NCBI GenBank assembly: GCA_002269645.1
Contig: NIVC01001784.1
Location: 1 to 64,000 of the forward strand
Reading direction: 5' to 3'
Source of the DNA: Macrostomum lignano
Taxonomy: Eukaryota
Length of the DNA: 64,000 bases
In this document: positions 1 to 32,740 of the stretch, piece by piece
How the letters are laid out: each line of letters opens with the position of its first letter
Numbering within the stretch: position 1 is the first letter of the stretch
The notes under the pieces: generated by a model
What the model was told of the DNA's origin: nothing
The model's database searches: none
Seen by the model: only the letters and a program-made list of their open reading frames with translations
Position numbers and translations under genes: made by a program

Positions 1-22
1 CCGCGAATAGGCCACGAGGCCC

Positions 23-1930
<1,908 letters not shown>

Positions 1931-2756
1931 GCTCCCTCGAAGTTTACGAACATCCCGCACGGTCCATGAATATCTCTACATGTATTGATACTCATAGAGC
2001 TTTTCGTTATACGAGTATTAGGATATAACGAAATTTACTCCTTCACTCCAAATTTACTCCAAGGACTACTCCTTCTACTTCAGTAGTCCTTGACTAATAG
2101 TTGAGCGCGTTTATTATTAGCTAACTTGCATCAACAACTAAAATTGATTGACTGATTGATTGAAACCTGCGAATCGTTTCCCCCTAAAGTCAAATAGATT
2201 CCTTTCTTCCGGCAATACGACCAGAGGGCAGCACTTGAATTTGACCGATGCCACCGCGGCCACCACGTTGGTGCTCTGCTAGCCACATGCAAAGCTTGCA
2301 GCTGTTTCATTTTTTGTCGATAAAACTTGGACCCCTGCTGCGATCGGTCAATTGCTCCTGGCGATTTGGATCAGCACTATCGACGAGAGATATTTTCTTT
2401 CCGAAAACTAAACGATCTAACCGGTACTCGTAAGTAAAGACACTCGGTTATTCTTTTTGATAATTTTTATACTTAGGAATTTGGAATTTACAAGCATAAT
2501 TTTATTTAATTTATTCACCTGGCATAAAAAATAGTTCGATACGCGGGTTATTCTAGAAGTTTTCGAGCTCAGCCCGATCACCGAGTGCTTGCAAGACTCG
2601 CTTCGACACTCATCACCGATTAGTTCTCTATTCAGCCTCTATATCAGACCCTAATTCTGATAGCTAGTTCGTCATTAGCAATGCCTGCAGTTTTTAACTT
2701 TGGATTTCTATCGGAGAAGAAAAACTTTTAACGTTGACAATCAAAAGTCATGACAA

Positions 2757-4013
2757 GTATTGCTTTTGTCCTGCTATGTGGAGCAGTGGCATGCAAAACG
2801 GAACGGTCCATAAGAATTCATGCCAAGCGGTTGAATTAACTTACAAAAGCAAACCATATATAGATAACCAGATTTTTTGCAATATGGAACGGTACGCGAT
2901 CTGCAGCGCATCGTCGCCGCCTTGCACGTGGACTGTCGATGAAGGGTTGTGACAGTGTTGTTAGGAGTATCCAATTTTTCTGTTCACCGCATTTGGTCAA
3001 CATTCTAAAAGACAAGACGGCGCAGGTTGGAAGCTGCCACTTAATTAGCACTAGCAGACACCACTTAGCAGACAGCTGCCAACAACTGGACCCTAAGCGA
3101 AACTGGGTAGTTTTTAATTTTATGTATGGCCCGAATTTCTATCGTAGCGTACGGAGATCCCTGAGAACCATCGGAACAGAACTTCAACACGAATCCTGAA
3201 GCAGTGCATGGCACTTAAGCAGTTGAGATTCATGTTAAAAATCGAGAGAGAGGCGGCTGAAGCCGTTGGGCCACGCAATCACTGCTGGAAAGTGCGCTGG
3301 GTTGGAGCTGCCCTGCAACAGATTGTTTGAATTGTCTCTGCAGCGACATCAGTTTTGAGAGTTAATTTTTGTAAATTTTGATGCTTTCAATCTGTGACAA
3401 AATATGCTTTATTGATTCAGTTTTTATTCTTTCTTTAAATGTGTAATAAACCACTGAAACGAGGAGATACTCTATGCAGAATCTCCGAGGCGAAGCCTCA
3501 ATATTTACAATATTTCCGGACCGCAGGCTTTGGCTCTAAGTCAACAATGGTCCGCCCCTGTACTAAACTTCTACGGGCCAACCACGATCAATTTCAGTTC
3601 CCCGACAAACAAGATGCAATAGTGATAGCAATAAAAAGTTGTAGACTAACGAACTAAAACAACTATAACTGACTAAACGCTTGTTTACCGTTTTAACGTT
3701 CAATAAATATACGTGTTCTTGTTTTACTATCAATTTTAAGTTTGTCTATGGTGGCGGAGTTAACGCTACCAATAATCTCCGCGAGCTTAACACTAGGGAC
3801 ATAGGCAAGGCGAACAGGCAAAGTTGATTAAATAGAACTCAAATCATTTATTCTATTCTGGCTCACCGTTCCATATTGCAAGACAAATCGGCTTATCTTA
3901 TGACTTGCTTTTGTAACTTTTGTAAGTTAATTCAACCGCTTGGCCATAGAATTCTAATGGACCGTTCCGTTTTGCATGCCCGCTGTTCCGTATAGCACGA
4001 CAGAAGCTATATT
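2757..4013. repeat. Inverted repeat pair (~135-150 bp arms) around a ~1 kb spacer; possible old MITE
   Basis: GGCATGCAAAACGGAACGGTCCATAAGAATTC...GCGGTTGAATTAACTTACAAAAG at ~2787-2850 recurs as its reverse complement at ~3910-3980. Similarity extends to GCAATATGGAACGGT on both arms. No clear TSD. Confidence 0.7.
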
Positions 4014-4774
4014 ATACTGAGATGTACGTTTCCATTTATTGACTTTACAAGTTCTGTATTAGTATGCTAGTAAGAATCGCAAATGCCACGTACTTGGTTG
4101 AATTTACCAAGTAAGCATAGTCGACCTATACTCAACAACATTAAAAAGTCGCCACCTTTGAGAGAGCGCAGTAAATTCTGGCTCAGTATTGACTTTTGAG
4201 TGACGCAACTTGCGCCACGCGACGCAGAGTTGGGCTGGGTGAGGAGGGATTGGGAAGAGCGGAGGGCGAAGATTGGATGGATTAAAGCTTCCGCCCGGTT
4301 TTCATTGTTTTTTAAAGCATTTTTTAATATTAAAATGGTTGTCCAGGTGATAGACACTGGTCAAAAGACACTGCCCACTGGGGCAAAGGGTAGTGACTTT
4401 TCAATGTTGCTGAGTATATCTTTTATTAGAGACAGGGGCTGTGTGCACCCTGGCGCACTTTAAGTGACATTGTCACACAAATTTTTTCAAGTCATGCGAC
4501 AAAATTGAAATTACATTTATTTCTATGAAGTTGAATTTTTGCTGCATCTCTAGCTTTTCTATCTAGCGTCGATGACGAATCTGAAATTACCAACTCGAGG
4601 CCCTGAATGAAATAATAGTTAAATGGTTTAAAAAAATAACTTAGTATTCGATAATATGGTTTTCCGTGTACATGTAATTATAATATTGGTAGCAGCTAAT
4701 TATTGCATTGTATTTGACTCAATCGACAGCGCCAGTGGTTGATAGCGATAACACAAGTCGCGTTCGTTCAAAGG

Positions 4775-7700
4775 ATGCAAGGCGCCCAGCTTCTCGTTTT
4801 CGCGCTGGCACTCAGCGCCTGCCCGATGGCAAATGCCGAAGGCTTGGGCACCAAAGTGGCCAAAAAAGCGTGGGACATTGTTCAAAACAAGCTGAACCCA
4901 AAGAGCAAGGCCGAGATGTACCAGAAAGCTGTGGACATTGTGTCGGACCACATCACCAAGTCTGCCAACAAAGCTGAGAAGCTAGCTAGTAGCTACATGT
5001 CGGCTGTGGACAAAGACCCCGGTGCTCTCATCACCAGGGAGAGCATGAAGAAGATCATAAGTGGCAGCTCATTCCTGCCGCAGAAGGCCGGCACAAGAAC
5101 GGTGTCTCTGCAGTCGGATCAAGGATTCAACGGTTTCACCAACTACCAGCCATCGGGTTGGAAGATCACCGAAACAATGAGCGGTCCTACAGATAAGAAA
5201 GAGGAGCCTTCAGAGACCAAGGAGCCCGTTTACACTTACCCGATGGGCCTCGGCCCGTTCTGCTCAACCAGTGCACGGAGAAGAACTACGACAAGACCAG
5301 CCCGTGCTACAACAGCAAGTTGTTCGACCTGCAAATCACGATCTGCTTGAATCAGATCGACGCAGCCAACTATATCGGGGTGGGCTTCAACGGCAGAGGC
5401 TACTACAATGCGCAGAGTAGAAGAGCCAGCCTGGTTCAAAGAAGCTGCTCAAACCGAGCAACCTTCATGGGATCGGACATTCCCGACACTATGAACATAT
5501 TCGGCATTTTTGAAACATTCGCCGAGACTAAGTCGTTCCAGTCAGCCGATGAGTATATGCAATACATCAGACATAAGGCTGGATTATCCAACCAAAAGAA
5601 CTTGTTCGCGAGCGAGGCCAGCAAATACGGCAAGGCCAGCGGAATCGGCTTTGATCTTGGAGGCGTTGGCGCTGCAGCGGGAGCTTTGATCGGCGCCAAG
5701 GCCGGCGGTCCAGCGGGAGCCGAAATGGGCGCGGGTCTGGGCGGGGCTATTGGTGGCACCATCAATGGAGGCAGCGGATCTGGGTCAGGAAACGCAAAGC
5801 AGAGCGAACGGAGCAACAGTTCGTCTGCAACCAGTCACTTCGAAGCTTCAGACAAATTTCAAAAGGCCTCGAATAATTTCTTCGCGATTATGTATGTCAA
5901 CGTTATTCTGTACGAGATCAGCTTGGATGAGGTGAAGCCAACAGATCTCAGTCTAGCCCTGCTTAAGGATTACATGAGCCTGCCAGTGTCCTATTTCTCC
6001 ATCGGTGCTGACGTCAAGTACCAGAACTTCCTGCTGCGTTGGGGCACGCACTTCATCCGTTCAGGAAAGTTCGGAGGCCAACTGAAAATTACGAAGAGAG
6101 CGAGATCGGATAAGGTTCAGTCAGCTCAGCAGTTTGCCAGCATTGCAGAGACCGAGTTTCAATCCATGTTTGCCACTCTGCAGTCAAAATACTCGCAGAA
6201 GGAGAGCGGAATTGCTATATTCTTCATCAACACGAAGAGCAAGGAGGTTGCGCAGAACAGCCAAGCCAAGGCAGGGTCTGAATACTCGAGCTCTATGAGG
6301 CAGACACAGAGCCAATCGCGTCAATTTCAGCAATCTGAGTTTACCCAGACAACCGTGGAGGCTCAAGGTGGAACTCCCGAGATTGCAGAAGCTCTCGTTG
6401 ACTTTTACACCCCTGCGTTCAAGCAGATTTACCACGATTGGCTGGCGTCCATTAAGGACTACGCTAAGCCGTTCGAGTTCCAGTTGAAAGCTATTGACGT
6501 GCTGTTTAACATGAACATGAACGACCTGTTTCCGGCTGGCAACATTGACTTCGGCTGCGTCAAGGATGGAGGCGGCAAAGCGAATATTCTCATCGAGCCC
6601 AAGACGAAACTTCGCTACTATATAGATGTTCAAACTCAGTTTTCCAACTCTACTAAGATTGAGGTAAAGAAAAAAGTCTATTGCAAGTACTCTAAGCTGG
6701 ACGACTTCAAGACAGATCTCGACAGGCGCAGAATCTCTTTGGAGAGGGCCATCGGGGTGTACATGGCAGAGGGGCCGTTTCCAACATCGACTTTCGAACT
6801 CAAAGGCGGTGAGCCAGGGTGCGAAGAGGCCACGCTTGGAGCACTGAGAGCGGCCAATAAGGGCAAGTCGGCTGTGCTCAAGTTCTCGGAGATGAAAAAG
6901 TACCCATTTCTTGTTACATTCGATTTACCAGAGGCAATCCCGGGCCTCATTCCGAAGCAGTCAAAGTTCAGACTCATCTACAGATCAGGCATGTGGTTTG
7001 CGACTGAGCCCACACAAACGACCATGCATCTGTACGATGGCTGCGAGATTCCAGAGTCCAAAGAGGCAAAGATCTGCTTCAGGAATATTATCATGACTTA
7101 CAATGAAGCGTCTGGATTTCTGCGCGTTGATGCGAAAGATTTCCGTGCGACGAAAGCCAGGATACCAGCTTTGCCAATCTGGCTGGCAAATTCCGTTGTT
7201 GCCAGGGTACAAAAGCTTGAAATTTCTGCAACCGCTAAGAACGATATGTATGGCGGCCGGGGTGCGGTTCCTTGCAACATCAAGTGGGTGAACTCGCATC
7301 GTCTTGACCCGCAGAAGGAAGAAAACTGCATTCACTTCACTGCCGCCACCTCAGGTGACATATTCGTCATACTTTCAGCCATTCCAAGGGACCATTCTAC
7401 CTGGTACTACCTGCAGATCAATCCCGAAGGTGTTTCGTTTTACCAGGCGATGGAATTAAAACGAAGGGACACTCAGAAAGGAATGGGAATCCTTGGCGAT
7501 AGCAACCTCTTTCAATCATTCTTCGTCTGTGTCGTGCAGAAGAAGGACAGAGTAACGATGCAGTACGGAAAGGCAGATCCCGTGAGCGAGGTCGGCACCG
7601 TGTATTCGGGTTATACATTTGCACCCGACAGCCAATTCAGCCGTTTGTCATTTTATACATTCGGGTCCGGTCGCAAGCCTGTGTCATTAATGGACATCCG

Positions 7701-10700
7701 TCTAACCCGAATGTTGCCCCAGGTGAAATGTTTGAGCAAAAACTACATCAATGTAGACGGGCACTGCGTTCTCGCGTGCCATTCGGAGTGCGATCAGTGC
7801 GATGTAGCCAGAGACAACAAGTCGTGCCGCCGGTGCAAGCACGTGCGAGTGGAGACTGGCAGCGGAAAGTTGAAAGTGACGGAGTGTTTCGCAGAATGTC
7901 CGCCTGGAACCACCTTGAAATCGTCTAAGACTGCGACTAAGAAGACTAAGGCTAAGCCGACTGGTCTGTGCGAGAAGTGTCCGGCAGGAACCTTCAAGAG
8001 TGGCGACGGAAACCAAAAATGCAGTCCGTGTCCCAAAGGAAAAATAAGCGACGCTGGAGCCAAAAGCTGCGTAGCCTGTGAAGCCGGAACCTTCAACGAC
8101 AAGCTTGGCCAGTCGAAATGCCAGCGCTGCGCACTCGGAACCTATTCAAGCGACGGTGCGGTGAGCTGCACAAAATGCCCTGTCGGGCACTATTCCGATA
8201 GTTTAGGCCAATCATCCTGCTTGCCATGCTCTTTTGGCAGCTTTGGGAAAGTCACTGGCCTGGCAAAGTGCACCCCCTGTTCGAAAGGATATTTCGCAGA
8301 CAAAAAAGGTCAATCAATTTGCTCAAAGTGTCCGGCCGGGACGTCCAGTGCCAAGGGCTCGATGACTTGCAATAACAGTTGCACGAAAGGCAAATTTAGC
8401 CCTCGAAAGGGTGAGCCGTGCAGGCCGTGTCCTCCAGGCACGTACGGCGACAGTGTGGGCTCTTCCGCTTGTTCGAAGTGCAAAAAAGGCACCTACCAGT
8501 CAAAGTCGGGTCGAACTTCGTGCATTTCAGCACCGATTGGTCACTACGTGTCGAAGGAGGGGGCCACTAAACCGTCTAAATGCGCAGCAGGATCATTTAC
8601 CGCTAAAACAGGAAGCATAAAATGCCGCCCGTGCTCTCCTGGAAGCTATGCGTCATCCACCGGCTCGACCGCTTGTAAAAAATGCTCGCGCGGCTACTTC
8701 CAGCCTTCGACAGGCCAATCGAGTTGCAAAAAAAGCGAGATATCATCATTATGTTAATCAGGAAGGAGCGGTGAAGGACACCCCTTGCTCTGCCGGTTAC
8801 ACGGCTGCTTCCGACCGCAGATCTTGCCACAAGTGCCGTCCAGGTACCTATGGCTCGGGAACAGGTCTTGGTTGCACAGGTTGCTCATGGGGTTCCTACT
8901 CAGGAAAATATGGAAGTTTGAGCTGCACCCCATGCCCAAAAGGCTATTATCAACCTAATCATTATGCAACTTCATGCATTCCCGCTCGGCGAGGCTATTA
9001 CATCAACCGTGTGGAATCAACATCTCCTGGCTCCCAATGCGCCCCTGGCTACTATTCTGATAAGCCGGGTCAGGCTTACTGCAAGCCTTGCCCTGCTGGA
9101 CAAAGGAGTGAGAAAACACGCGGATCGACCTCGTGCCGGTATTGCGGACCCGGTACTTATTCATCTAAATCTGGCAGCACCCAGTGCAAAAAATGTCCAT
9201 CGTCTGATTATGTCACTAATGCGGCCCGCTCTGCGTGTCACAAGTGTCCAGCCGGTTCTATCGCGCTGAGCCAGGACAGGAGAAAGTGTTTTAGTGAGCT
9301 TTTTTACTTCATTCTGATTCGAAGTTAGTCAAGGCCCTATAAAGTTCAGTATACTTATTATTCTAAATATATAAATACCAAAACTTTCAGAGTTTGGCGA
9401 GTGCTACTATCCTGGTAAAGACTTTGTTAGCACAAAGGTAAACCGTGCTTATGCTGGGCCGTGCCAGTCTTGGAGCGTGAAGAGCTGCTCCAAATACACC
9501 GAAGGAGTAAGTTGTCATACGCCAAACAAAAGGGTGCGTGAGGCTCAAGCAACGGGCAACACGTGTCGAATTATCGCCAAAGAAGGAGAAAAGAAGCCAT
9601 GGTGTTACACAAAAACAGCTACAAAATGGTCTCACTGCTCAATTCCTAGATGCGGAAAAAGTGAGTTGCTTGAATATTGATTACACTGCAGGGTAATAAT
9701 AGAGGAAAAACAACAGGAAGGCGTGTTCCGCAATGTTCTATTTTGCGTGACTAATGAAAACCCACTGTCTGGATTTTTATGATGTTAAGGTTTGTAGTTT
9801 AGAATTGATTCAATTTTAATATTTAGCAATGATTATTAAAATTTATTGCACTAAACGGAACCTATGCCGAAATTGTGTGAGAATTAAGTGCTTTGGGAAG
9901 CTCGCACCTTGTTTGTTGTTTGAAAAAGTAAAAACTATATGAGCCTAAATGGTAGCACAACAATTGCCCGAGACACCATTTTCTGCAATGCGTAGGGAAT
10001 GAGCGTAAGACTCTATGATGAATTCTATGATGAACTCTATGATGAACTCTTATGGTAAACTCTAGGGTAAACTCTATGGTAAACTCTAGGGTAAACTCTA
10101 TGGTAAACTCTAGGGTAAACTCTATGGTAAACTCTAGGGTAAACTCTATGGTAAACTCTAGGGTAAACTCTATGGTAAACTCTAGGGTAAACTCTATGGT
10201 AAACTCTATGGTGAACTCTAGGGTAAACTCTATGGTAAACTCTAGGGTAAACTCTATGGTAAACTCTAGGGTAAACTCTATGGTAAACTCTATGGTAAAC
10301 TCTATGGTAAACTCTATGGTAAACTCTATGATGGTAAACTCTATGGTGAACTCTATGATGAACTCTGTGGTAAACTGTATGGTAAACTGTATTTTAAACT
10401 CTATGGTAAACTTTATGATAAACTGTATGGTAAACTGTATGGTAAACTGTATGGTAAACTGTATGGTAAACTGTATGGTAAACTGTATGGCGAACTCTAT
10501 GGTAAACTCTATATGGTAAACTCTATGGTAAACCTTATGGTAAACTGTATTGTAAACTGTACGGTAAACTCTATGGTAAATTATGGAAAACTCTATGCTA
10601 GATTCGTTCTCATAATTGTTTTTGCAAACTACCACCGTGGATTCATGCGCTATAATATTACAGAACTGAAGGAGTGCTACAGACTTGGCAGCACAGATTA

Positions 10701-10932
10701 CGTCTCGGGCATCAGCGTGACGGAGAGTGGCAAGACCTGTCAGTCATGGGAGATTCGCACCTGCCCATCTGGCACCAGCGGCAAAACCTGCCACGAGCCT
10801 AGCAGCGCAGTGAAGCGTGCTAAAAAGATTGGCAACACCTGTCGGATTGTTCCCGGCGATTCAGCCAAAAAGCCGTGGTGTTATACTACTACGAGTAAGA
10901 AGTGGGAGTATTGCAAAATTCCGCAATGCTGA
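4775..10932 (+). CDS. Secreted MACPF (perforin-like) mosaic protein: signal peptide - MACPF - FAMeT-like domain - furin-like repeat - ~26 GCC2/GCC3-type Cys repeats - 2 kringles (~1,685 aa after repairing two frameshifts)
   Basis: Exons 4775-9293, 9391-9660 and 10664-10932, with GT-AG phase-1 introns. Signal peptide MQGAQLLVFALALSACPMANA. Exact MACPF signature WGTHFIRSGKFGG (6040-6078), followed by VEAQGG, WLASIKDYAKPF and RRISLERAIGVY. Repeats of CxxCPxGxY/F type span ~7970-9290. Kringles ECY..CQSW..NTCR..PWCYT..W..C.IP.C occupy exons 2 and 3. Frameshifts at ~5260 (one base missing) and 8728-8734 (A7 where A6 is needed). Confidence 0.9.
5362..6765 (+). other. MACPF domain within the mosaic gene
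   Basis: Signature Y/W-G-T/S-H-F/Y-x6-GG is matched exactly. Two long Ser/Gln/Lys-rich segments sit where TMH1 and TMH2 are expected. Confidence 0.9.
7270..7705 (+). other. Farnesoic acid O-methyltransferase-like (Methyltransf_FA-type) beta domain within the MACPF gene
   Basis: IHFTAATSGDIFVILS..WYYLQI..GILGDSNLFQSFFVCV..MQYGK resembles the F-x-V-x-A-x-x-D-x-H/F-I-x-L ... Y-E-I ... F-W-I ... V-G pattern. Recognised by eye, not by HMM. Confidence 0.55.
10010..10580. repeat. 12-bp minisatellite (GGTAAACTCTAT/G) in intron 2 of the MACPF gene
   Basis: Directly visible tandem array; it accounts for the MVNS/RVNS and EFTI ORFs. Confidence 0.95.
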
Positions 10933-11776
10933 ATGATTAACCTTTACTGGAGACGGTTTATAGTTGACGACTCAAAAATCATAAAAACTGGAAATTTTCT
11001 CTTTTGGCTTTTTAGTTTTCTCTATTTATTTCGTAATTTTACCGGGTTTATTTACGAGCGTAGTTTTTTTTCAAAGGTATTATCATGTTCTTATCTATAT
11101 TTAATGCTTTGCTGCCAATTCCCATAAGTTTTCCCCCTTAATAAACTGCGACGCTTGTCTAATATTCCTTTTGACTCGTCTCTAGACTGCGGTTTGAGGC
11201 TAATTTTTCGTTGCAATATAATAAATGCAAAACAATACAATTGAGCTTTTTAATGCCTTAGATCATTTTTTCTATTATAAATACGCGGATACCTATGATG
11301 GGTACATGTACTTAGATGCAATAAAGAATTGGTTTACGCTTCATGTTTCATGCAGTTAGCTAATATCGAAGTCCAGCCACGTGACGCTGGAGAATTTTCT
11401 GCTAAGATTTGCCAGCAAATGCATTTTTCCTGCAGCGCATTTGGCAGCTAGATTCTGTCTGCATTGCCTCCCTAATGCTTAAGTAAGTAATAGATTTAGC
11501 CGATCAAAACGTTTTGATAGTAACTGCATATCCAATTCATATTTTTGTAGGTATTCAGTTCTAATACATGCAGGAGTACATCGGTGAGCTATTAATTCAT
11601 GCATATGCCGTGGCGCTTTGTCGCCAAAATCTCTTTATTAAGACTTACGCGGTACTAGCATTAGAGGGGGGTTGCAATGCAGACAGAATCTGCTGCTGCG
11701 TGGCCAAATGCTCTGCAGAAAAAAGCATTGCGGGCAAATCTCGGCGGGCAATTCGTCTGCGGACAATTCTCGTGCT

Positions 11777-12774
11777 GGGATAACGACGTTTGCCTGCGCG
11801 ACGTTTGCCTGCGCGACGTTTGCCTGCGGGACGTTTGCCTGCGGGACGTTTGCCTGCGGGACGTTTGCCTGCGGGACGTTTGCCTGCGGGACGTTTGCCT
11901 GCGGGACGTTTGCCTGCGGGACGTTTGCCAGCCGACGTTTGCCAGCCGACGTTTGCCAGCCAACATTAAGTCAGTGAGTGAAAAAATTTGATACTGAAAT
12001 TTTCGCAGTTTGTTTTTTAGCCCAACTTTTTGGCGGTTCTTCGCATGTGTAAAAGTTCGAAAACGAAATCTATACAAATCATGCAGTTCATCAATCTAAC
12101 ATCTAGTTTAACAAAAAGTTCTTTGGATGTGAAAATATTATAAAGTTTACTTCTGACAGCTTTGTATCGCTTTTCCCAGTTTCTATTCCCATTTCCCAGT
12201 TCATTGGGAGATCCAAAAGTAAGTGAATTAATTCCAATGCAGCTTGTCAAGTGCACGCTGTCATGGCCAAACTCCATTAAGCAGAGTTTGGCTTTTGAGT
12301 TAAGTATAAATAGGCGAGACTAAGCCTATACCATTATGGATGTCTCAGTCTTTTCCCATTTAGCTTGTAAACACTTAGCTTGGTTGGCCACTTGAGATGG
12401 AAAGGGCCATTCCATGGCATACATAGACATCAATTGTGACATTGGAAACTCCTATTTTGTATTTTTAGCTTTCTATTTAGGCAGACAAGATCAATTACTT
12501 CAATAAGCCTGGACAGTAGTTTGTTAGTAAACCTGTATATTTAATAGCAGTTGTAGGGAGCAAGGTGGAATTAGATTAGTGCTATGTCCTCAGTTTTCAA
12601 ACGCAAGTACATGTAAGCCTAGAGAGGGCATTACTTCTTTAACCAATTGCCGCCTGTAAATGTCCGGTTGGCAAACGTCGGCTGGCAAATGTCCCGCTGG
12701 CAAACGTCGGCTGGCAAACGTCCCGCAGGCAAACGTCGGCTGGCAAACGTCCGGCAGGCAAACTTCGTAGACCC
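11777..12774. mobile_element. 998-bp non-autonomous DNA transposon with tandem-array TIRs and an 8-bp TSD (Merlin- or MULE-like)
   Basis: Termini GGGATAACGACGTTTGCC and (reverse complement) GGGTCTACGAAGTTTGCC. Inverted arrays of the 15-bp unit GACGTTTGCCTGCGG lie at ~11785-11960 and ~12660-12765. CTCGTGCT is duplicated at 11769-11776 and 12775-12782. Confidence 0.85.
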
Positions 12775-13929
12775 CTCGTGCTCCATGTGACGCATATTGC
12801 ATCACCCACAGTTGAGACGAAGCCATCGCGTAAATTGCGTCACTTAAGTCTGAGATCTGAGAAAAGTTGACCACTTGTGTTTGGGTGGAAACTTTAAAAT
12901 GTTGCTGAGTGTATATCAATATTTTCGAGCATTGGTACGTGTGCTCTTAAATGCTTAAACGACTTAGCGTCAAAACGAAAAGCGACGTCAAATTCCGAGT
13001 TTTTTAATTCAAAATTCAATGAAATAAACGCGGTTTGTTGTTTCTTAGAATTGTTCGATAAATGAATCATCCACTTTTTGCCTATTCATTCGGAGGGTGG
13101 ACATTTTGGGCGTACAAACAAGTGTGCATGTATCACTTGCTGATTATATTATTATACTACATGCGTAGAGATATTGTACAGTTAGAGAAGGCTTGAAGGG
13201 ATCATGGCTTGCCGTGAATCAGCTACGCACGTGCACACTTGTTGCATTTTATGATATAAAATGACTTTGACCTGCCGTTCTCTGTTATCAGCGGCAAAGT
13301 TTCTCTGAAGCGTTTAAACTCGCAACTGCAGCCTGTTAATCGGGACGCTATACTCGTATGAGTTGATACACAGCTAGGTGTAGGCATATAGCTATACTAT
13401 ACGTTTTAAATCACCGTGTGACCCTTCAGATATCGCTTCGCAATTCCAACCAAGGTTGATGGGTGCATAGCTACCAGCTATATATAACCCAGTAGAGTTC
13501 CTAGTAGGGTGCCAAAGCTGTCCATCAGAGCTAGCCAAAGCTATACATTTAGCTATACTTTTGCATGTTAAAATTTTGATTGTTAGGATTGTAAGGATCA
13601 CTTTTCAAGGTAAGCTCGGTGATCATATACTTCTTTCTGCGGGATATTATCTAGTCATGTCAAAAACAGATAATTTAAATGTGGTTGGTCCTCTAAACTT
13701 CCGTTTCTTTATAGAATGAAGCTGAACCGGGGCAAAAATTAAGATGAATAATTTGGATCGACAAAAAGAAGACGCGTCTGCACGTGACGAATTCATATTG
13801 TTGACATAATACTAATGCAATTTTTTTAAAGTATTTAAGCTACAATGATTTTATGAAACTATATTTTTGCACGCAACTTAAAAAAATTGTATTTTTATCA
13901 ACGTACCGATGTAAGTATATACGAGCAGC

Positions 13930-14540
13930 TATACTGTCCGTCAGGAGTTCCGGAGCCCTTGCTACAATGTCTTCTAGCGGACATAATTTCAGTCCGTTTC
14001 AATTGTAACTTGATTCAAATGAAAGCTGCGGATCTCAGCTCCATGATGTGGTCAAGAAAAAGTTTATTCGAAGGAGCGCGTGTGAACAGGCCAGTGTTAT
14101 GTACATAAAGGTTAGAGAAAAAAAGTGAGGAAAAGACAAACAAGCAATTGTCTATGGTTGCTGAGTCTATGGAGCAAACACACATGGGAAGGAATCGGTT
14201 TGCGCGCAGTGTTCAGCCTGGCTAACATTAGTCTATGGCCAAAACTTGTGTTGAAATCAACAGGCTCTTATGGATTCTTGTGCAGTCAGCTTTAATGGGA
14301 GAGTAAAAAAGAGTAAAAATAATTGCTTGTTTGTCTTTTCCTTACTTTTTTTCTCTGACCTTTATGTACATAACACTGGCCTGTTCACACGCGCTCCTTC
14401 GAATGGACTTTTTCTTGACCACATCATGGAGCTGAGATCCGCAGCTTTCATTTGAATCAAGTTGCAATTGAGACGGACTGAAATTGTGTCCGCTGGAAGA
14501 CATCGTGGCAGGGGTTCCGGAACTTTTGACGGACAGTATA
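13930..14540. mobile_element. 611-bp foldback/MITE with 220-bp inverted arms
   Basis: 13930-14149 is the reverse complement of 14321-14540 with scattered mismatches. Spacer is 171 bp. Both ends read TATACTGTCCGTCA, compatible with a TA target site. Confidence 0.85.
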
Positions 14541-15458
14541 ATTGATTCTGTAATAGTATCCACTACAAATTGATTAAATGTTCTTATGATACTACTATTA
14601 GTTCGCCGCTTGTATGTTTTGCTCCTACAGAAAGCCTGAATGAATTTATTTTTCTTCAATATTTTTAGCTGCTTCGATCGAAGTAATGTCGTGTGACTGC
14701 ATAATACTTCTGTACAGAAATTCGCGAACTATACGCTACTCACTACTACTTACTGATGGTAATGTTGTGACAGTAGAGCTCATATTTTACTGCCGCGAGT
14801 CAGTTACGAAATCGAGCAAACTTTTTGTAATTATGTTTTGTGCGAATCAATATAGTCGAGCATGGACTCGAACCCGGATAGAGAAGTCAACTGATCGAGG
14901 TCAAAGCCCCTCTCTTAAGTGTCAAGTTTAAATGTGTCAAGCACTTTTGTCTCCTTAGGTTCCAACGTATTTCTCAGCTATCATGCATAAATTCAAATGA
15001 GAAGCAGACGCGAAAAAAGCAGAAAGCAGGAAAGCTTACGAGCTATCAACAAAGAAAGCCTCGCCAATCTAAGTAATTCTTAATTATTTACTTAGCATAG
15101 TAGCCATTATATCATAAACGTGCATGTAAATAACGTATAGCATAGAGGACGCTTGTGAAGATAAATTACATGCATGCGTATCTTTCGCGTAGCTATACAG
15201 GTAAATGCCTATGTGCAAACCTGTGCAAACAAAAAACAATAGTTGGATGGTACGAGCGAATCTTTACAGTAGTTTATTGCAACTTTATGAGCCTGGAACC
15301 TTTCGAAACCTGGCAACTTAAAGCAGCACCTCATGCTTTCGAAGGTACTAGAACCTGGCCTGACAGTTGGAGTTGTATCGACGCCGCAACGGAGGTTGCT
15401 TGGATGCATGGGATTCAAGATGCTGATGCTGAATGCAAGCGTCAGAAGATTACAAGCA

Positions 15459-16316
15459 TTAGAACGCAGTCCACCGAATTGATTGCGAAAGCTGCAGTCC
15501 GCAGGCGCCGCTGCCGTTGCCGTTGTACGCGTCGCATTCTTCGGTTGCGATAAACTGATTAGCACCACCGGACGAAGCTCTCGTCAGCTGACCGCAGCTA
15601 CCCAGCGACGGCGGCGGCGGTGGCGGAGGCGGCGAGCGCTTTTTTCGACAGCAGCCGCTGTCCAGGCAGCGCTGGAAGGCCGGCTGGCCGTCTGCGTCGC
15701 ATAGCAGGAATGCGGTTGGAGCGAATCCTTCCACACCATCGCTAAGGCGGCGGACCCGCAGCCAATCTGGCCGACGCTCGCTGCAGTCGATGGCCAGTAT
15801 TTTCTCTTCGGCTGACAGGGCCAGCTCGTCCGGGCTATTGGGCGACGGCGAATAGGCGAATACGACTGTGAAGGCGAGGCCGCGGCACGGACGGCGGTGT
15901 GGGTTCTGCAGGAGCGTCTGCTGCTGCATCTGCTGCTCGATCTGTAAATCAATGCCAAGGCCTGAGTCTTCGCGACTGCAGCAGGTGCCGAGAGACGCTG
16001 CGGGACGTAACGGATGCGTCGCAGCCGCAGGCTGGTTGAGCCGCTGCTGCTGGGTGAGGCACTGCTTGAATTGCTGGAGCTGGTTGGGTTGCTGTTGTTG
16101 TCTGGTTTTTTGGTGCTGGTCCTGGTTAGGCCGCTGCAGGTGACGGTGCTGTGGATGAAGCGGCTGCTGATTTTGCTTGAACAGTCGAATATGCATGTAT
16201 TTATAGCCACACTTCATGCATGCATGTAGTACACGTACCGTTTCACTTGAAGCAGGCTGTAGCGACTCGCTCGATGCGCCCTTAGTTTTATTTGAATGTT
16301 TCACAAACAAATTCAT
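15459..16316 (-). CDS. Q-rich protein with a single SH3 domain followed by a polyproline tract
   Basis: FTVVFAYSPSPNSPDELALSAEEKILAIDCSERRPDWLRVRRLSDGVEGFAPTAFL (~15870-15703) has the Y..EL..W..G..P pattern of SH3 domains. The 5' boundary is uncertain and this may be one exon of a larger gene. Confidence 0.65.
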   Translation of the reverse strand: MNLFVKHSNKTKGASSESLQPASSETVRVLHACMKCGYKYMHIRLFKQNQQPLHPQHRHLQRPNQDQHQKTRQQQQPNQLQQFKQCLTQQQRLNQPAAATHPLRPAASLGTCCSREDSGLGIDLQIEQQMQQQTLLQNPHRRPCRGLAFTVVFAYSPSPNSPDELALSAEEKILAIDCSERRPDWLRVRRLSDGVEGFAPTAFLLCDADGQPAFQRCLDSGCCRKKRSPPPPPPPPSLGSCGQLTRASSGGANQFIATEECDAYNGNGSGACGLQLSQSIRWTAF

Positions 16317-18339
16317 TTCAACAAAATAATAACTGTAATCCTCTAATTCTAAATACGAGCTGAATTTTGATTTTTAACTCAACAATATGCTGTCAACCCC
16401 GGAAATCAAGCTATCCAAGATTCACTGTGGAATGGTGCTTCACATTTCAAACATTCCAAGCCTGTTGCATTTATAATATAAGAATGTTTTTCTTCTTCCA
16501 GTGAGGCTGCGAAGCAAGAGGTAGAATTTGTTTTGCTTGCTGCTGGAGTTCATTCTACACTGTAGCGAGTCTGCATGGTTGGCTGGCTTTTTGAAATGCT
16601 TCTGTGTCAAGAGCGACAGATAATGCAGAGCCATGCAGTTAAGAGACTTGAGAGAGTCATTCCATAGGCGGGTTTGTCAATTTGTTTGTCAAAGCTGAAC
16701 CAACATGAGCAGTAAAAACTGATGGCAACAGAGGCCGCTCTTGCTGTAGTGGCTGCAGCAAATGCTCAATTCAACTGTGTCACTACTCAGAATTATGTAG
16801 CTAGACATTTGCACTGGTTCAGTGTGTGTTGCTTACAGCCAATTTATTAATTTTTACTGACACTTCAGTATATCTATAAAGCATGGTGAGGCTTGAGTCG
16901 CTTCACCATTCCACAACTACAGCACTGTCATAAAGTTTTTATGACGAAAAATGCAGAACACCTTTCTCTTTTTTACGGCTAACAATATATGCAGTAGAAA
17001 AGAACAAAATTTTAAAGAAGTCTTCTCTATGAAGGCAGAGACCCCCACAGTCTCCCCAGTCGATGCAAATGTACAGCCGAGCTCCCCATGAGCTCAAATT
17101 TTTTTCTAGCATAGATTGTTGGTTGATTTTTCAGTGAATTGTACAGTGAAGCAGTCAATTGTTCTCTCTCCGGATTTTACTTTCCTTTGCTAAGCTCAAA
17201 ATAGCTAGTAGTGGCTTGCGTAAAATGACATATACACTCGTAAATCGTTAATACGACCTTAAATGCGCCGACCCGACTTGTTCCTGCCAATTTTTTTTCC
17301 AAAAGTCAAACTTGAGCAGAATTAGTTTGTGCTTTTGTTGTATCCCACATATACACTTGTAACGATTGAAGTACTGGTGCAGTATTTTTAAATCCTGATT
17401 TAAAAAAAGTAAAATATTATCCGTTTTTTAGATTACTTTTTTCTCCAGTGGCCAGTTATCAAAGATTTTGTATCTGAGCGTTTTATTCACTTTACTAACG
17501 GTAAACAACTATCTACTCTACGATTTGCATGAAAAGCTTTAATCATTTTCACTAATGGAAAAATAACTGCAAGAAAAAAGCATCACATATCAACTGTTTT
17601 AGGGTCGAACACATGATGGTCATGGTTATTAGATTATATTTAACAAACAACATATCAACGACTGTTAAATTTGAAACCTTCTAATCAAAAACAAGCAGTA
17701 AGTTTTCTGTCAATAAAATGTACTAAAAATACCAAATATATGCTAACACTGCGAAGCTAAATAAATATATACTTGCGAGTTGCGGCTTTAAAGAAACGAA
17801 ACTTTTAGGTAAAACGTTTTAACATTTGTACAGCATGTAAAGTTCTATACAGGACAACAATAATCAATGAATAACGTATGGAATTTTAGCTACGAAACGT
17901 AGGCGGTAGGCATCCAAAGGGGCTATTGTTTAAGTAGAACCAATCTATTGAGTTTTTATTTATTATGGATGGGTAATTGGCAGCCGCTTATGCATATCAA
18001 GTGTTCGAATGACTTTTTTCTAGCAAAAATATATTGAATTTTACAAACAATTTGATTCTCTGCATGTCCGTGCCTAGCCCGGGTGGGTAAATTGGATAAA
18101 TGTTTTTGATTTTTAGTTTCTTGGCTTTTGCCATGTTAAAAATATTTGATATGTGAGAGCATTGTTGCTTTTAATTGATTTTTTCAAAGATTATCTAAAT
18201 AACATCCCAAATCCGCTTTTTTAGCTGAAGCCTGAAAAGATTTAACATAACAATTAGTGTTTAACCGCCCTTACTCTACTGCATTGTAAGGGCGGTTAAA
18301 CACTATTGATTTTCTTAGTTAAGTTTGGCCTGGGTGAGA

Positions 18340-18900
18340 ATTATCGATTGGCTAGTCAAGCTCCGGTGGGGCCTGACTTTTAATCGTTTTAAAAAACGTC
18401 GGCCGCTCACCGTCCCCCCGCCTAGGCTCTTTTTTATGACATTAACGTTTAAATTAATAGCCTTGCAGTGGGTTTGGTCTGGTTGAACATTATCGATTTT
18501 TTGGTTAGCCCGCAGTTCAGACCGGGCCTGACTTTTAATCGTTTTAAAAAAACGTCGGCCGCCCACCGTCCCCCCGCCCTAGGCTTTTTATGACATTAAC
18601 GTTTAAATTAATAATAGCCTTGCAGTGGGTTTGGTCTGGTTGAACATTATCGATTTTTGGTTAGCCCTGCAGTTCAGACCGGGCCTGACTGTTAATCGTT
18701 TTAAAAAAACGTCGGCCGCCCACCGTCCCCCCGCCCTAGGCTTTTTATGACATTAACGTTTAAATTAATAATAGCCTTGCAGTGGGTTTGGTCTGGCTGA
18801 ACATTATCGATTTTTGGTTAGCCCTGCAGTTCAGACCGGGCCTGACTGTTAATCGTTTTAAAAAACACTCTACCGTCTCTTTCAATCTGCTAGGCTCTTT
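18340..18900. repeat. ~157-bp tandem repeat, ~3.6 copies
   Basis: TTATCGATTTTTGGTTAGCCC starts at 18490, 18647 and 18804; a diverged copy starts at ~18341. Confidence 0.9.
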
Positions 18901-27879: not shown

Positions 27880-28740
27880 TCTTATTGCGACTTAGTTGCT
27901 TCTTTTTGCGACTTACCTAATCCTTTTTGCGACTTACTTAATCCTTTTTGCGACTTACCTAATCCTTTTGCGACTTACCTAATCCTTTTTGCGACTTACT
28001 TAATCCTTTTTGCGACTTACTTAATCCTTTAGCGACTTACCTAACCCTTTGCGACTTACCTAACCCTTTGTGACTTACCTAATCCTTTTTGCGACTTACC
28101 TAATCCTTTTTGCGACTTACTTAATCCTTTTTGCGACTTACCTAATCCTTTTGCGACTTACCTAACCCCTTTGCGACTTACCTAACCATTTGTGACTTAC
28201 CTAATCCTTTTTGCGACTTACCTAATCCTTTTTGCGACTTACTTAATCCTTTTGCGACTTACCTAACCCTTTGTGACTTACCTAATCCTTTTTGCGACTT
28301 ACCTAATCCTTTTTGCGACTTACCTAATCCTTTTGCGACTTAGCTGATCCTTTTGCGACTTACCTAACCCTTTTGCGACTTACCTAACCCTTTTGCGACT
28401 TACCTAACCCTTTGTGACTTAGCTAATCCTTTTTGCGACTTACCTAACCCTTTGTGACTTACCTAATCCTTTTTGCGACTTACCTAATCCTTTTTGCGAC
28501 TTACTTAATCCTTTTGCGACTTACCTAACCCTTTGTGACTTACCTAATCCTTTTTGCGACTTACCTAATCCTTTTTGCGACTTACCGAATCCTTTTGCGA
28601 CTTAGCTGATCCTTTTGCGACTTACCTGATTCTTTTTGCGACTTACCTAATCCTTTTTGCGACTTACCTAATCCTTTTGCGACTTACCTGATTCCTGTTG
28701 CGACTTACCTGATCCTTTTTGCGACTTACCTGATTATTTT
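27880..28740. repeat. 21-22-bp minisatellite (GCGACTTACCTAATCCTTTTT), ~40 copies
   Basis: Directly visible array. The GCGACTTA core recurs in related dispersed repeats at ~26380-26530 and ~29105-29290. Confidence 0.95.
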
Positions 28741-31700
28741 TACAACTTAGTTTGCTTCTTTTGCGAATTGTTTTTCTTTTGCTTCATTATTTTCCCTGAA
28801 CTGCTCTTTCTTTCGCTTTCCTCTTGCCTTTCTTGGTTCTTGTGTTTTTCTGTTTTTGGTTGACTCAGTTTTGCGACTTACCCCTGGTCAGCCACGATTT
28901 ACGGTGGCCGGATCGGCCAGGTCGGCCAGCAGTTGCGCATGTATGCTATTGGCTATATTCCAGATCATGCATAGGCCTATGCTAAGTTTAATGCTGGAAA
29001 AATGACAAGATCTCATTTGTACACTAGGTTTATATGCTAATATAAAAGTGTCATTTGACACCATTGTATTTGCTATGTCATATATGCTAGGATATACCCT
29101 AATACATACATGCGCAACTTCTAAAATTCGGTTGGCCATGTAACTTAGTTTTAACAAAATGCGACATAGTTTTTGGCCAAAAATGTGACTTACATATAAA
29201 AAACCATTAGGCAAATTTAACGTAACTTTAGGTAAATGGCAGGAGTAACTATGACTATCTTATTAAGACAAAATGCCTCATCAGCTACTTAGTAGGCCCT
29301 ACTACTACTTAGGTATTTTTTAGATGGGCATTTTTGCAACTTCCTTGGTTGGCAGCCAAATTGGTTGGCCAGATCGGCCGACTGTTGCACTGTTACAGGG
29401 CTGATTCCTCTGTCTAGAAATCTCAGCCGCTGACACCAAGTTGTCACAGGTGTTTTACCTCTTACTTTATCAATTTTAATCCCAACCGCTGATACCAAAG
29501 TTGTCGCATGTTTTCAATTTCCCTCTATTAAATTTATACTGCTGATACTAAATTCTGCCTTTGGTATTTTTAACTGTTTCTTAGAATTTCATTTGAATAT
29601 ACAAGTACTGGTAGCGTCTTATGTATTAATCTGGTAGCATTCTTAGTATATTAGTCTGGTAGCATTTTTAGTATATGGTCTAGTAGCGTTCTTAGTATAT
29701 GGCCTGAGCGGTCTTACTGGTATATGTACTTTCTCTCTCCAGTCTGGGCGTTACCGAGATTAGAAGGTCACAGCGATTACTCTTAGTACTTTCTCTGCAT
29801 GAATCCCTGATTCCCAACTCTCAATACCTCTTTAAAATAAGCAATGATCTGAGAATAAGTTTTGAACAAGCTGTAAACAATTTAATTCGTGAGAGCAAGT
29901 TGAATCCTACTTCCCTAAACTTCACTCATATTTATACTATTTCTTTTGTGTGTATTTAGACAAACATAGAATATTTGAGAATATTTTGCAAAGTAAAACA
30001 AAAATAGAGTTTTTGTGTAACATTTTAAAACTAGTATTTCTTAGAAACAAAAACCACTTCTACAGCACATGTATGCCCTGATATATGCTAAAAATGGTAA
30101 GACCCTTATTGTACACTGGAAAATCCCAGTGTATATATTACCTTTCAAACTATGGTCATATAGACCATTGGAGAGTTTAGCTATTTTGGCATACAATTTT
30201 GAGCTTAAGAATTTTTTGATGCAGGGGACCTACATTCTATAATAATTTCCTTTTAAAATTTTTGCATATGCATGTGCATTTTAATGACAATGAAAGTTGT
30301 TACTAAAATAGTATTGACGACTAAGATTGATTATGCGTGTGCCATAGTGTTAAGCTATATACTTCAAAGAAAGGTAAAACTAGTCAGATAGTTAATTGTT
30401 ACAAAGAGAAGAAAAGAACAGGAAAATTTATTGTTTGAGCCATCAAAGTTGAAAAGAGCATAATGCAAAATATGTAAAATATATAGTGAGTGGCAAACAT
30501 GCCAATGCATAAGGAAATGCATGGACAACACAAGACAATGAAAGGACCCATGGGATAGACCAACAAAAAAGCAGAAGACCAAAGTGGAAAAAAAGAAAAT
30601 GAAAAGAACCAACAGGGGGACATGGGAGGACTATGGACTGGGAATGGAAAGCCATAACTAGGACTAGGAAAATGATAAAAATAGCCCTGGGGTTAAAAAA
30701 TAGTTCTAGAACTGGTCCTGAAAAAAAATACAAATTTCATGCAAAATTGTTTCATTTAACTTCCAATGTTTCAAATATAGTGGCAACTGCCTGCCACATA
30801 TATGAGGGTGCCATGCAGCATTAGGGCAAAATGAGCAGTTAGCCACTGCTGATGGATACCAGCCATAGTTGGCAAGCACTCAGCCACCTCAATTTGCAGG
30901 CTACATGCCTCTTTTAGCTCTGTTACAGGGCTCAGTTCTTGTCAGGCAAGTTGGATTCATTGCTGTAGCCAAACTGACAATTTAGACATTTCAACAAAGT
31001 TGCTTAATGCTTGCCAGGATCTCTTGGCATCTAGCGTGCCTTATAACTAGCATAACTAGGCTGCAGCAGAGGCAAAGTTGCTAGCCAGCCATTTCTGACT
31101 GCAGCTGCATGCCCACAAGACTGGCTTTGTTTTTTTGGCTAGGGCTGCCTCCTGTGATGGATGCTATCTGGCCAGATGGCTCTAGACACCATAGTCATTC
31201 ACAAAGCATGGGCCAGGGCAGCTTATGATCACCTAGCATAGGAGTTCCATGAGAATAGCAGGCTCTGGCTGCAGTGTTGATTCACATTGGCTGGCACATT
31301 CTTTGCCTCTTGGCTAGTCACTTACCTATGCTGCTAGTCACAACACTAGTGTCACTAGTGTGTCACTTGTCAGTCAGGCTCTAGTAAACTCAGGAACTCT
31401 TGTTTGTCAAAACTAGGGTGGCATGTACATTGCTCATGAATTGATCTAGCCAAACATTGGTAGTAAGTCCATTGAGCCATGTGGAAAAGCGGAAAAATTA
31501 GAAAATTGGTAAAAGGGTAGTATGTTTGATTAAGAAAAACTCTAAAAAATAGAAGTTTTCATGGAATAAAGATGGAAAGGTTCAAAAGATTATAAAATTT
31601 TGCTTCAAAATGATTTTATAAGAGAATCAGTCAATGTTGACAAAAGTTATATACATTTTAAAGTTTTTGGTTTTTTCTTTAAATTTCACATTTGTGATTT

Positions 31701-32149
31701 TTTTGTCTATGTTGCTAAAAAATGACAACACATAAAAAAAGAATGGTATAGTAAAGCAATGTTAATGATAATAGATAGAAAAGACAATAAATTTTACTTT
31801 TTATAGGTTTTTTGAAGAAATTTTTTATGTATTGTAAAATTTCATTTAAAAACTTTAAACAACTATTTCTACTAATGAATCTAGTCCCCCAATTGCCGGC
31901 ACCTGTTTTTTGTTTTAGAATTTTTTATAGAATTTAATTGTATCATTCTTTTTACTTTTTGGTCTCTACTTTTACCCACATAGTGGTCTAAACATGACCC
32001 CCCAACAATATATATACATAACCATTTATTAGCAGTGGACTTTCTTCTTCTTTTTTCTTCTGTTTTATTATCCAAAATGGCATACAAACAAGAGGAAACA
32101 ATGATCTTATTGCCAGATCTTAGGCCTATTACAACTCCAATGATGGTAC

Positions 32150-32740
32150 CAATGGTTGCATTATGTCTACGAGTATTGTAGACAATCCTGTTGAGCAAAG
32201 CATTCATTAGGCACATAAAGCTGGCTAAGGCTGAGCTTAGTTCTATCAGCATTAAATTATAGGCAAATTGTCCGTAGTGCAGCATGGTGAAGGCAGTCAG
32301 GTCTTGATCTTCTCGATACAGTGAAATCTGATAGTAGCTGCTATTCATATCAAAATTGCTAAACAGCTGGCTTCCTTCAAGGCTATCAAATGCTTCTTGG
32401 ATGTTAGGAATTGGGTATAGAAAGTACTCACACTTTTGGTTCAGACTCGGAAAATCTTGTACAATCCTCAGGTTTCTGTTTTTCTTTGGGATGATCACCA
32501 GTGGGGTGTTGTAGCTAGAAAAGCTCAGTCAAATCATGCCTTTGGCAAGTAGATTGTCAAGCAGCTAGTGTACCTTGGGCAACAGATGCAGCAGAATCCT
32601 TTGTGTTGGTAGATGTACAGGATCTCTATCCTTTAGCATGATGTTGTAAATGACTATCAGTTCAGCTAAGATTGTGTGGCCCTTGAGAGAAGATGGTCTT
32701 GTATTTCTTCAATTCAATAGCTCAATGACTTGATGACTTT
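32150..32740 (-). mobile_element. Degenerate Ty3/Gypsy pol (reverse transcriptase) remnant
   Basis: LDNLLAKGMI*LSFSSYNTPLVIIPKKNRNLRIVQDFPSLN..YPIPNIQEAFDSLEGSQLFSNFDMNSSYYQI..DQDLTAF..MLIELSSALASFMCLM. It has stops and is truncated before YxDD. Confidence 0.88.

Follow-up and report, generated by a model that had tools for sequence, protein, structure and literature searches.

A predicted secreted MACPF protein of Macrostomum lignano with a Cys-repeat region and two terminal kringles, member of a widespread but unstudied modular family

Introduction

In animal immunity, killing by pore formation is chiefly the work of MACPF proteins, and the accessory domains joined to them set the target. 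Perforin-1 (MACPF-EGF-C2; 3NSJ) is secreted and soluble; complement C6-C9 carry small disulfide-rich modules (TSP1, LDLa, CCP, FIMAC) on the flanks of the MACPF domain; apextrin consists of MACPF and then ApeC; the cnidarian nematocyst toxins PsTX-60A/B and AvTX-60A are EGF-like and MACPF proteins of about 60 kDa. Bacterial insecticidal proteins of about 500 amino acids (aa), such as GNIP1Aa (6FBM) and Mpf2Ba1 (8B6U/8B6V), have a C-terminal beta-rich domain after MACPF, which in toxins of this type serves for receptor binding. In MPEG1, a MABP/P2 domain is followed by a transmembrane anchor and a cytosolic tail. This last family (MPEG1/perforin-2) is an ancient metazoan one that is also reported from flatworms, with 13 copies in Macrostomum lignano (PMC10781884). 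Here we describe a further MACPF gene of this flatworm, at 4775-10932 (+) of a 64,000-nt window, that is, the whole stretch of DNA analysed (positions 1 to 64,000 of the forward strand of contig NIVC01001784.1, assembly GCA_002269645.1).

The initial annotation of this locus had proposed a secreted perforin-family protein of about 1,685 aa with an unusual string of domains (MACPF, FAMeT-like, furin-like, some 26 Cys repeats and two kringles), broken by two frameshifts, and had named it the best candidate in the window for an undescribed system. Position and length proved exact after repair and splicing. The gene is real, its product is a lineage-specific elaboration of a widespread but unstudied modular family, and the intact protein had already been deposited, both in GenBank (PAA73168.1) and in UniProt, as a hypothetical "MACPF domain-containing protein"; in this sense, "undescribed" did not hold.

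MACPF domain and predicted secretion

The MACPF domain (aa 200-581; 5371..6516, +) is recognised by Pfam PF01823 at aa 349-581, scoring 57.9 bits (E 2e-15) where the cut-off is 21.5. At E<=1, the Pfam scan of the window protein returned seven families: MACPF, Ephrin_rec_like, Kringle, NCD3G, two TNFR-like models and a weak Gly-zipper. The signature region YQNFLLRWGTHFIRSGKFGG (aa 416-435; 6019..6078) was evaluated by regular-expression tests and column counts, and the pattern [YW]-G-[TS]-H-[FY]-x6-G-G is found at aa 423-435. In its strict form, the PROSITE pattern (PS00279, Y-x6-[FY]-G-T-H-[FY]) fails because W423 replaces F/Y, so that the "exact" signature of the initial annotation stands in the broader form but not in the strict one; W is the family consensus at this position (35/42).

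AlphaFold (AF2) was run on aa 162-987 with 47 homologues, giving a pLDDT of 71.3 and a pTM of 0.60 (model residue i corresponds to protein aa i+161). Four long central strands are found at model residues 79-94, 207-223, 265-283 and 364-370, and low pLDDT is concentrated at model residues 126-204 (TMH1) and 310-360 (TMH2), with few short poor loops elsewhere. The predicted fold is a genuine MACPF fold with the bent four-stranded sheet on which the initial annotation had made its reading depend. The two segments that it had placed at TMH positions are likewise present, each between strands of the sheet: TMH1 (aa 256-367, ~112 aa; 5539..5874) between strands 1 and 2, and TMH2 (aa 445-524; 6106..6345) between strands 3 and 4. 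When the model was compared with the PDB by Foldseek, the top matches were all MACPF proteins, namely GNIP1Aa (4e-12), perforin 3NSJ (7e-12), Mpf2Ba1, MPEG1, Plu-MACPF, C9, TgPLP1, C6 and C8, with a probability of 1.00 to perforin, GNIP1Aa, Mpf2Ba1, MPEG1, C9, C6, C8 and TgPLP1. The Pfam score, the signature motif and the predicted sheet with its TMH clusters thus all identify the protein as a member of the MACPF superfamily. A separate AlphaFold run with 11 sequences was discarded, since its pLDDT was 45.6 and the MACPF part too poor; Foldseek of that model gave lectin-fold hints alone.

Inside TMH1 lies a Gly/Ala-rich, glycine-zipper-like insertion of 46 aa (GGVGAAAGALIGAKAGGPAGAEMGAGLGGAIGG...; aa 288-333, 5635..5772), which doubles the usual TMH1 length. 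It matches the Pfam model Gly-zipper_YMGG weakly (E 0.26); it is kept in the paralogs P0002 and P0003, and is absent from P0004 and from non-flatworm relatives.

The protein begins with a signal peptide, MQGAQLLVFALALSACPMANA, followed by EG (aa 1-21, start codon included; 4775..4837). Its identification comes from the sequence together with a hydropathy scan rather than from a dedicated predictor; it has a hydrophobic core and an A-x-A site with predicted cleavage after A-N-A, and constitutes the strongest hydropathy peak of the protein; PAA73168.1 starts identically. The scan of the whole protein found no 19-aa window with a Kyte-Doolittle value >=1.6, hence no membrane anchor, and no hydrophobic segment in the C-terminal 700 aa. 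The 1,685-aa protein is therefore predicted to be secreted and unanchored, as initially annotated. Between signal peptide and MACPF domain, the N-terminal region (aa 22-199; 4838..5370) has in its C-terminal part a motif conserved in family alignments (YPMGxG..LMNGC..DPCY; YPMGLGP..LNQC in the window protein), and relatives likewise have N-terminal extensions, of 143-222 aa ahead of the aligned core.

A conserved core with exchanged heads

Relatives were collected by word-indexed searches and by a full HMMER scan of 1.84 billion representatives, which yielded 342 clusters at E<=1e-3 and 57 at E<=1e-30. Relatives with the core occur in at least five phyla, including cnidarians, annelids, brachiopods, flatworms and amphioxus, and named members come from Macrostomum, Branchiostoma (many paralogs), Lingula, Owenia, the corals Oculina and Montipora, and Nematostella. 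The conserved core corresponds to aa 1-990 and comprises the N-terminal region, MACPF, an extension of ~250 aa, a ConA-like sandwich and a furin-like piece; within it, some 830 aa are collinear from a Cys motif before MACPF to the Cys that ends the sandwich (28-40% identity, E 1e-120 to 1e-240), and invariant Cys as well as WGTH, GG and PCN.kWsN motifs are common to the family.

What follows the core differs between relatives. Post-core domains in relatives include F5/8 type C (discoidin), CUB, C-type lectin, SUEL lectin, SRCR, pentraxin/LamG and chitin-binding domains, and further EGF, Sushi, HYR and fn2; Ephrin_rec_like repeats are also present in some amphioxus members. In Macrostomum itself, two gene clusters end in kringles and three in another domain, for which the sole Pfam signal is a weak galactose-binding/discoidin-type match in one of the three (P0003, E 0.7). 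Among the 182 family proteins fetched, kringle tails are limited to Mlig027585, the cluster of the window gene, and Mlig022132. The architecture is thus no one-off; the kringle head alone looks lineage-specific.

Members are labelled "uncharacterized", "hypothetical", "unnamed protein product" or simply "MACPF domain-containing protein", and no characterised family was found to which the architecture maps. In the literature searched, no paper carried the gene, protein or UniProt identifiers of the window protein, none linked MACPF to kringle/Ephrin_rec_like or to Methyltransf_FA, and the work on MACPF in flatworms, corals, amphioxus and Lingula consisted of MPEG1, apextrin, complement or toxin papers unrelated to the core family; Mlig027585 and Mlig022132 had no entry in the M. 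lignano paper supplements examined. One database entry deserves separate mention: P0019, named [quoted passage not shown] by NCBI, has 405 aa on a 1,250-nt contig and shares 55% identity with the flatworm protein over the eukaryote-specific extension. Its source is almost certainly flatworm DNA that was mis-binned into a metagenome-assembled genome of a bacterium.

Extension, sandwich, Cys-repeat region and kringles

Between the MACPF domain and the Cys-rich part, aa 591-987 (window 6544-7734) match no Pfam family even at E<=10. The post-MACPF extension (aa 582-830; 6517..7263) is nonetheless conserved across phyla at 30-40% identity, and its pLDDT in the AF2 model is mostly 70-92. The last ~150 model residues, in turn, match ConA-like sandwiches by Foldseek (galectin, LG domains, a legume-lectin-like inhibitor and the levanase C-terminal domain), and define a ConA-like beta-sandwich at aa 831-985 (7264..7728); a PDB profile search with this domain gave no meaningful match. 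It had been called FAMeT-like in the initial annotation. The window sandwich has no match to Methyltransf_FA (PF12248) at E<=10, but when 18 orthologous sandwich domains were scanned singly this was the sole Pfam family matched by several of them: 5/18 did so, at E 0.002-0.04 and 14-18 bits, below the cut-off of 24.2, over profile positions 5-132 of 140. A remote relationship, rather than membership, is plausible from these matches.

The furin-like, growth-factor-receptor-like Cys-rich piece (aa 986-1065, 9 Cys; 7729..7968) is in a similar situation. It was delimited by Cys spacing, and the window protein has no Pfam match to PF00757 (Furin-like), but weak, sub-threshold matches occur at the equivalent position in two relatives, with E 0.026 in P0018 and E 5e-4 in P0036; for P0014 and P0015, precomputed matches to PF00757 exist. 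Weak matches under both labels are found in relatives, and none in the window protein itself.

From aa 1066 to 1506, up to the end of exon 1 (7969..9293), Cys spacing with a period of ~17 aa gives ~26 half-repeats, and Pfam Ephrin_rec_like (PF07699) scores 163.5 bits (E 9e-49) in 12 tandem stretches. The best solved relatives of these repeats are those of the mastigoneme protein Mst1 (8TX1; E 2.7e-38) and of ELAPOR1 (E 7e-7); because the repeats align to both, the region is probably an extended, stiff, disulfide-bonded rod. Two divergent kringles close the protein (Pfam Kringle, 50.4 bits against a cut-off of 34.3, E 3e-13, 2 stretches), so that the long Cys-repeat region and the terminal kringles of the initial annotation are both present. 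Kringle 1 is encoded by exon 2 (9391..9660); kringle 2, the best stretch (aa 1601-1685, profile positions 1-79 of 79), by exon 3, which includes the TGA stop (10664..10932). They match plasminogen (E 9e-32), HGF and apolipoprotein(a), and each has 8 Cys, i.e., the six-Cys framework and an extra pair. According to our reading of the HMMER alignment to plasminogen, the aromatic lysine-site positions (W62, Y/F64, W72) and a basic residue are kept and the acidic pair is replaced (..PGDSAKKPW..).

Gene structure, copies and probable assembly errors

The gene has three exons, one very long open reading frame (ORF), broken twice, followed by two short exons, with ATG at 4775 and TGA at 10930-10932. 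Adding one C, dropping one A and splicing out two phase-1 GT-AG introns gives a 5,058-nt coding sequence (CDS) and the 1,685-aa product. Frameshift 1 (5253..5256) is a CCC at 5254-5256, one C short of the CCCC of two other copies, in a three-way alignment with the loci of gene copies g1 (L002) and g4 (L003); inserting a C restores ...PMGLGPVLLNQC..., the same as in P0001, P0021 and P0022. Frameshift 2 (8728..8734) is a run of A7, one A too many compared with the A6 of both copies; removing an A restores ...SCKKARYHHYVNQEG..., the same as in P0022. Intron 1 (9294..9390) has 97 nt, and the g1 genomic CDS, cut at the three-exon boundaries derived from the window, translates exactly to PAA73168.1; the paralog Mlig022132 (P0002) has the same three-exon structure. 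Intron 2 (9661..10663) is mostly filled by a 12-nt minisatellite (GTAAACTCTATG, ~49 copies, 10005-10597), which shows indels between the window, g1 and g4, some of them of a whole 12-nt unit, and gives rise to spurious long ORFs on either strand.

At least three near-identical loci exist. The N-terminal 986 aa of the window protein are 100% identical to a UniProt M. lignano entry whose 90%-identity cluster contains PAA73168.1 (BOX15_Mlig027585g1, 1,685 aa) and PAA49111.1 (g4, 1,281 aa), and the repaired window protein has the same length as PAA73168.1 and differs from it in 5 residues. The window is about 98% identical to the g1 contig across the gene. With the g4 contig (NIVC01003974.1), window 1-18633 shares 99.68% identity, with 3 mismatches and 44 gap openings; this copy carries single-base deletions of its own at window positions 8559 and 8782, the former being the reason why the annotated PAA49111.1 is truncated. 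Over 9.9 kb, window and g4 differ by 33 indels vs 7 mismatches, 25 of the indels being single-base and 21 in homopolymers, an excess that points to long-read consensus errors and not to mutation. Most indel differences lie in the GC-rich window 1-3000, mostly as bases absent from the window, which suggests that the consensus of the window's assembly is prone to deletions. UniProt A0A1I8J970 (P0001, 1,296 aa) skips ~200 aa of Cys repeats and part of kringle 1 relative to window 8150-9660; this model is mis-spliced and no isoform, and the predictor appears to have bridged a frameshift with invented introns.

Apart from the two frameshifts, the window gene has no stop codons or further lesions. 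Against g1, the repaired CDS shows 18 synonymous and 5 non-synonymous changes (dN/dS 0.078). Against the 69%-identical paralog P0002, dN ranges from 0.085 (MACPF core) to 0.57 (Cys repeats); dN/dS cannot be computed here because synonymous sites are saturated. The GenBank annotation of the M. lignano assembly was built from an RNA-seq-derived transcript set (PMC5730564), and going by this annotation, rather than by the reads, transcripts therefore exist for the Mlig027585 gene cluster; neither a missing transcript nor a dN/dS near 1, the combination that the initial annotation had named as fatal to its proposal, was found. The window gene is probably one intact copy of this cluster under purifying selection. 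As for the frameshifts, the initial annotation was right that the window sequence contains them; by comparison with the other copies, both are almost certainly single-base homopolymer errors private to the window's assembly.

Other features of the window

The window is eukaryotic and repeat-rich. A 7.5-kb satellite (43084-50549; 16-nt unit TGTCGGAGATATGAAG, reported period 32/48) has an extreme GC skew of +0.7, and tandem arrays at 56951-58070, 53646-55010, 39939-40908, 27881-28749 and 11785-11957 consist of (GTCT)n-like repeats and of units of 28, 30, 21 and 15 nt; tandem arrays generate many of the window's long ORFs. There are also an SH3-domain ORF or exon (15459-16316, -), a reverse-transcriptase fragment (31881-32498, -) and a C2H2 zinc-finger ORF (36568-37407, +), with no evident link to the MACPF gene.

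Function and alternative explanations

The explanation that we favour, and hold to be rather probable, is that the locus is an intact Mlig027585 copy encoding a secreted modular MACPF pore-former with a lineage-specific targeting arm. The kringle head would capture a protein or glycan ligand on the target surface; the conserved sandwich beside MACPF would act as a membrane-proximal domain, like the C2 of perforin; monomers would oligomerise through the MACPF sheet, and TMH1 and TMH2 would unfurl into a beta-barrel pore. A secreted, target-directed pore-former would be the most likely function. Since one core carries exchangeable lectin and scavenger-receptor heads in relatives, extracellular defence against microbes is the likeliest role, with prey killing as a close alternative.

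Several points weigh against this proposal. MACPF proteins that form no pores are well known (astrotactins, BRINPs, Torso-like), and sequence cannot separate the two classes. TMH1, at ~112 aa, has twice the usual length and a Gly/Ala insertion that is not seen among the known pore-formers. In the kringles, the canonical acidic lysine-binding pair, D55/D57, is not conserved in our reading of the plasminogen alignment, and there is a problem of geometry, a head on a long rod having to be reconciled with bringing the MACPF domain to the membrane. The literature searched contained no expression site, assay or paper naming any family member. Finally, the assembly-error status of the frameshifts comes from other contigs and not from reads.

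This last point leads to the highly improbable reading that the window copy is a young pseudogene, with real frameshifts in one redundant copy of a neopolyploid genome in which g1 alone is functional. M. lignano DV1 does contain large duplicated blocks (PMC5730564), at least three near-identical loci exist and both frameshifts stand in the sequence as given; however, the same locus in the g4 contig (3 mismatches against 44 gap openings in 18.6 kb) has neither of them and two other single-base deletions instead, the differences between both contigs are overwhelmingly homopolymer indels, and neither stop codons nor other lesions accompany the low dN/dS against g1. Much more serious, albeit unlikely in our judgement, is a non-lytic MACPF protein, that is, an interaction or scaffold module of extracellular matrix, adhesion, mucus or developmental signalling, tethered by rod and kringles. 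The closest match of the rod is a structural filament protein (Mst1), kringles are protein-binding modules of matrix and clotting proteins, TMH1 is atypically long with its Gly/Ala insertion, and lytic activity is known for no family member in the literature searched. Such a scaffold fits less well with a core joined to heads of lectin and scavenger-receptor type (F5/8C, C-type lectin, SUEL lectin, SRCR, pentraxin/LamG, chitin-binding), the pattern of a recognition-coupled effector, with a fully conserved signature and sheet next to TMH regions that are Ser/Thr/Gly-rich and variable, as in lytic members, and with nearest structural matches that are lytic (perforin, GNIP1Aa, Mpf2Ba1, C9).

Lysis could also serve feeding. 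A prey-capture or digestive toxin from pharyngeal or epidermal glands, lysing diatoms or other prey in the manner of the nematocyst proteins PsTX-60 and AvTX-60A, seems doubtful to us: MACPF toxins are known in cnidarians and reported from nemertean transcriptomes (PMC6410017; references in PMC6626399), and a multi-copy gene with fast head diversification in Macrostomum (kringle or discoidin-like) fits toxin-like evolution, but amphioxus and Lingula, which are filter feeders, have the core family too, and in many copies, a distribution more in keeping with defence than with predation.

If the defensive pore-former that we favour is extended to the whole family, a more speculative picture emerges, to which we give rather little credence. 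The core would be an ancient modular arm of invertebrate humoral defence, a "recognition-coupled perforin" older than the cnidarian-bilaterian split and lost in the sampled vertebrate and ecdysozoan genomes, in which swapped heads aim one pore engine; it would constitute an analogue of the complement membrane-attack step without the C3/C5 cascade, and the Macrostomum glycine-zipper insertion at the TMH1 tip might alter the entry of the hairpin into the membrane. No current concept is overturned, since domain shuffling around MACPF is already well known. Nonetheless, a conserved, unstudied MACPF subfamily of cnidarians, spiralians and amphioxus, with its own accessory module and a striking head turnover, is represented here cleanly and at full length in a flatworm model open to transgenesis and RNAi. 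Should the family form pores, it would be a tractable means of asking how targeting specificity becomes attached to the perforin engine, and would give a view of humoral lytic defence before complement C6-C9.

Comparison with known MACPF families

As the initial annotation had anticipated, the protein fits none of the MACPF families that it named: Pfam finds no C2, TSP1/LDLa or ApeC, and there is no transmembrane segment. Perforin-1 (Foldseek E 7e-12) shares secretion in soluble form and a MACPF domain with two TMH clusters, and the beta-sandwich after MACPF could serve a membrane-proximal role like that of its C2; the window protein nevertheless has neither C2 nor EGF in the Pfam scan at E<=1, a ConA-like sandwich being found instead of C2, and an extra ~250-aa extension and ~700 aa of rod and kringles are added. 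In a PDB sequence search with the N-terminal 986 aa, the best match was a marginal one to complement C7 (E 0.06, signature region), with perforin at E 0.37. Flanking small disulfide-rich modules are a further likeness to C6-C9; unlike in these, Pfam detects no TSP1, LDLa, CCP or FIMAC modules, and the window protein has a different conserved extension of its own. Apextrin differs in its ApeC domain, of which no match is present in the Pfam results. Pfam includes an ApeC model.

GNIP1Aa and Mpf2Ba1 come closest in structure (E 4e-12 and 2e-10; for 8B6V, rmsd 5.3 A over 401 alignment columns), but these bacterial toxins have no Cys-rich rod or kringles, and the sequence match (E 0.24) is not significant. 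The cnidarian 60-kDa toxins were set apart by description alone, the window protein having 1,685 aa and no EGF match. MPEG1 membership, raised by the 13 M. lignano copies, was ruled out: MPEG1 is a structural match (Foldseek E 2e-10), but it is rejected because the window protein has no transmembrane anchor, ending in a kringle, and because no MPEG1 chains were among the PDB sequence matches.

Other likenesses are restricted to single modules. Chlamydomonas Mst1 (8TX1) and ELAPOR1 have Ephrin_rec_like/TNFR-like repeats that align to the rod, but no MACPF domain, and the likeness is limited to the repeat module. The kringles share with those of plasminogen, HGF and apolipoprotein(a) the six-Cys framework and the NxCR..PWCYT..WEYC core; they differ by the extra Cys pair and the non-conserved acidic lysine-binding pair, and no protease domain accompanies them. 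With FAMeT/Methyltransf_FA, the sandwiches of relatives align to nearly the whole PF12248 profile, all with scores below the Pfam cut-off; this domain, like the sandwich here a beta-sandwich, is also part of the CPAMD8 thioester proteins (PMC9363628), an immune-related family in which its use is extracellular.

The closest counterparts are thus the core relatives themselves. Nematostella LOC5500372, Branchiostoma LOC118430059 and Lingula LOC106160199 have the full ~830-aa core and the furin-like piece in common with the window protein; these invertebrate relatives have neither kringles nor the Gly/Ala insertion in TMH1, and bear instead F5/8C, CUB, lectin, SRCR, pentraxin/LamG, chitin-binding, HYR or Sushi heads.

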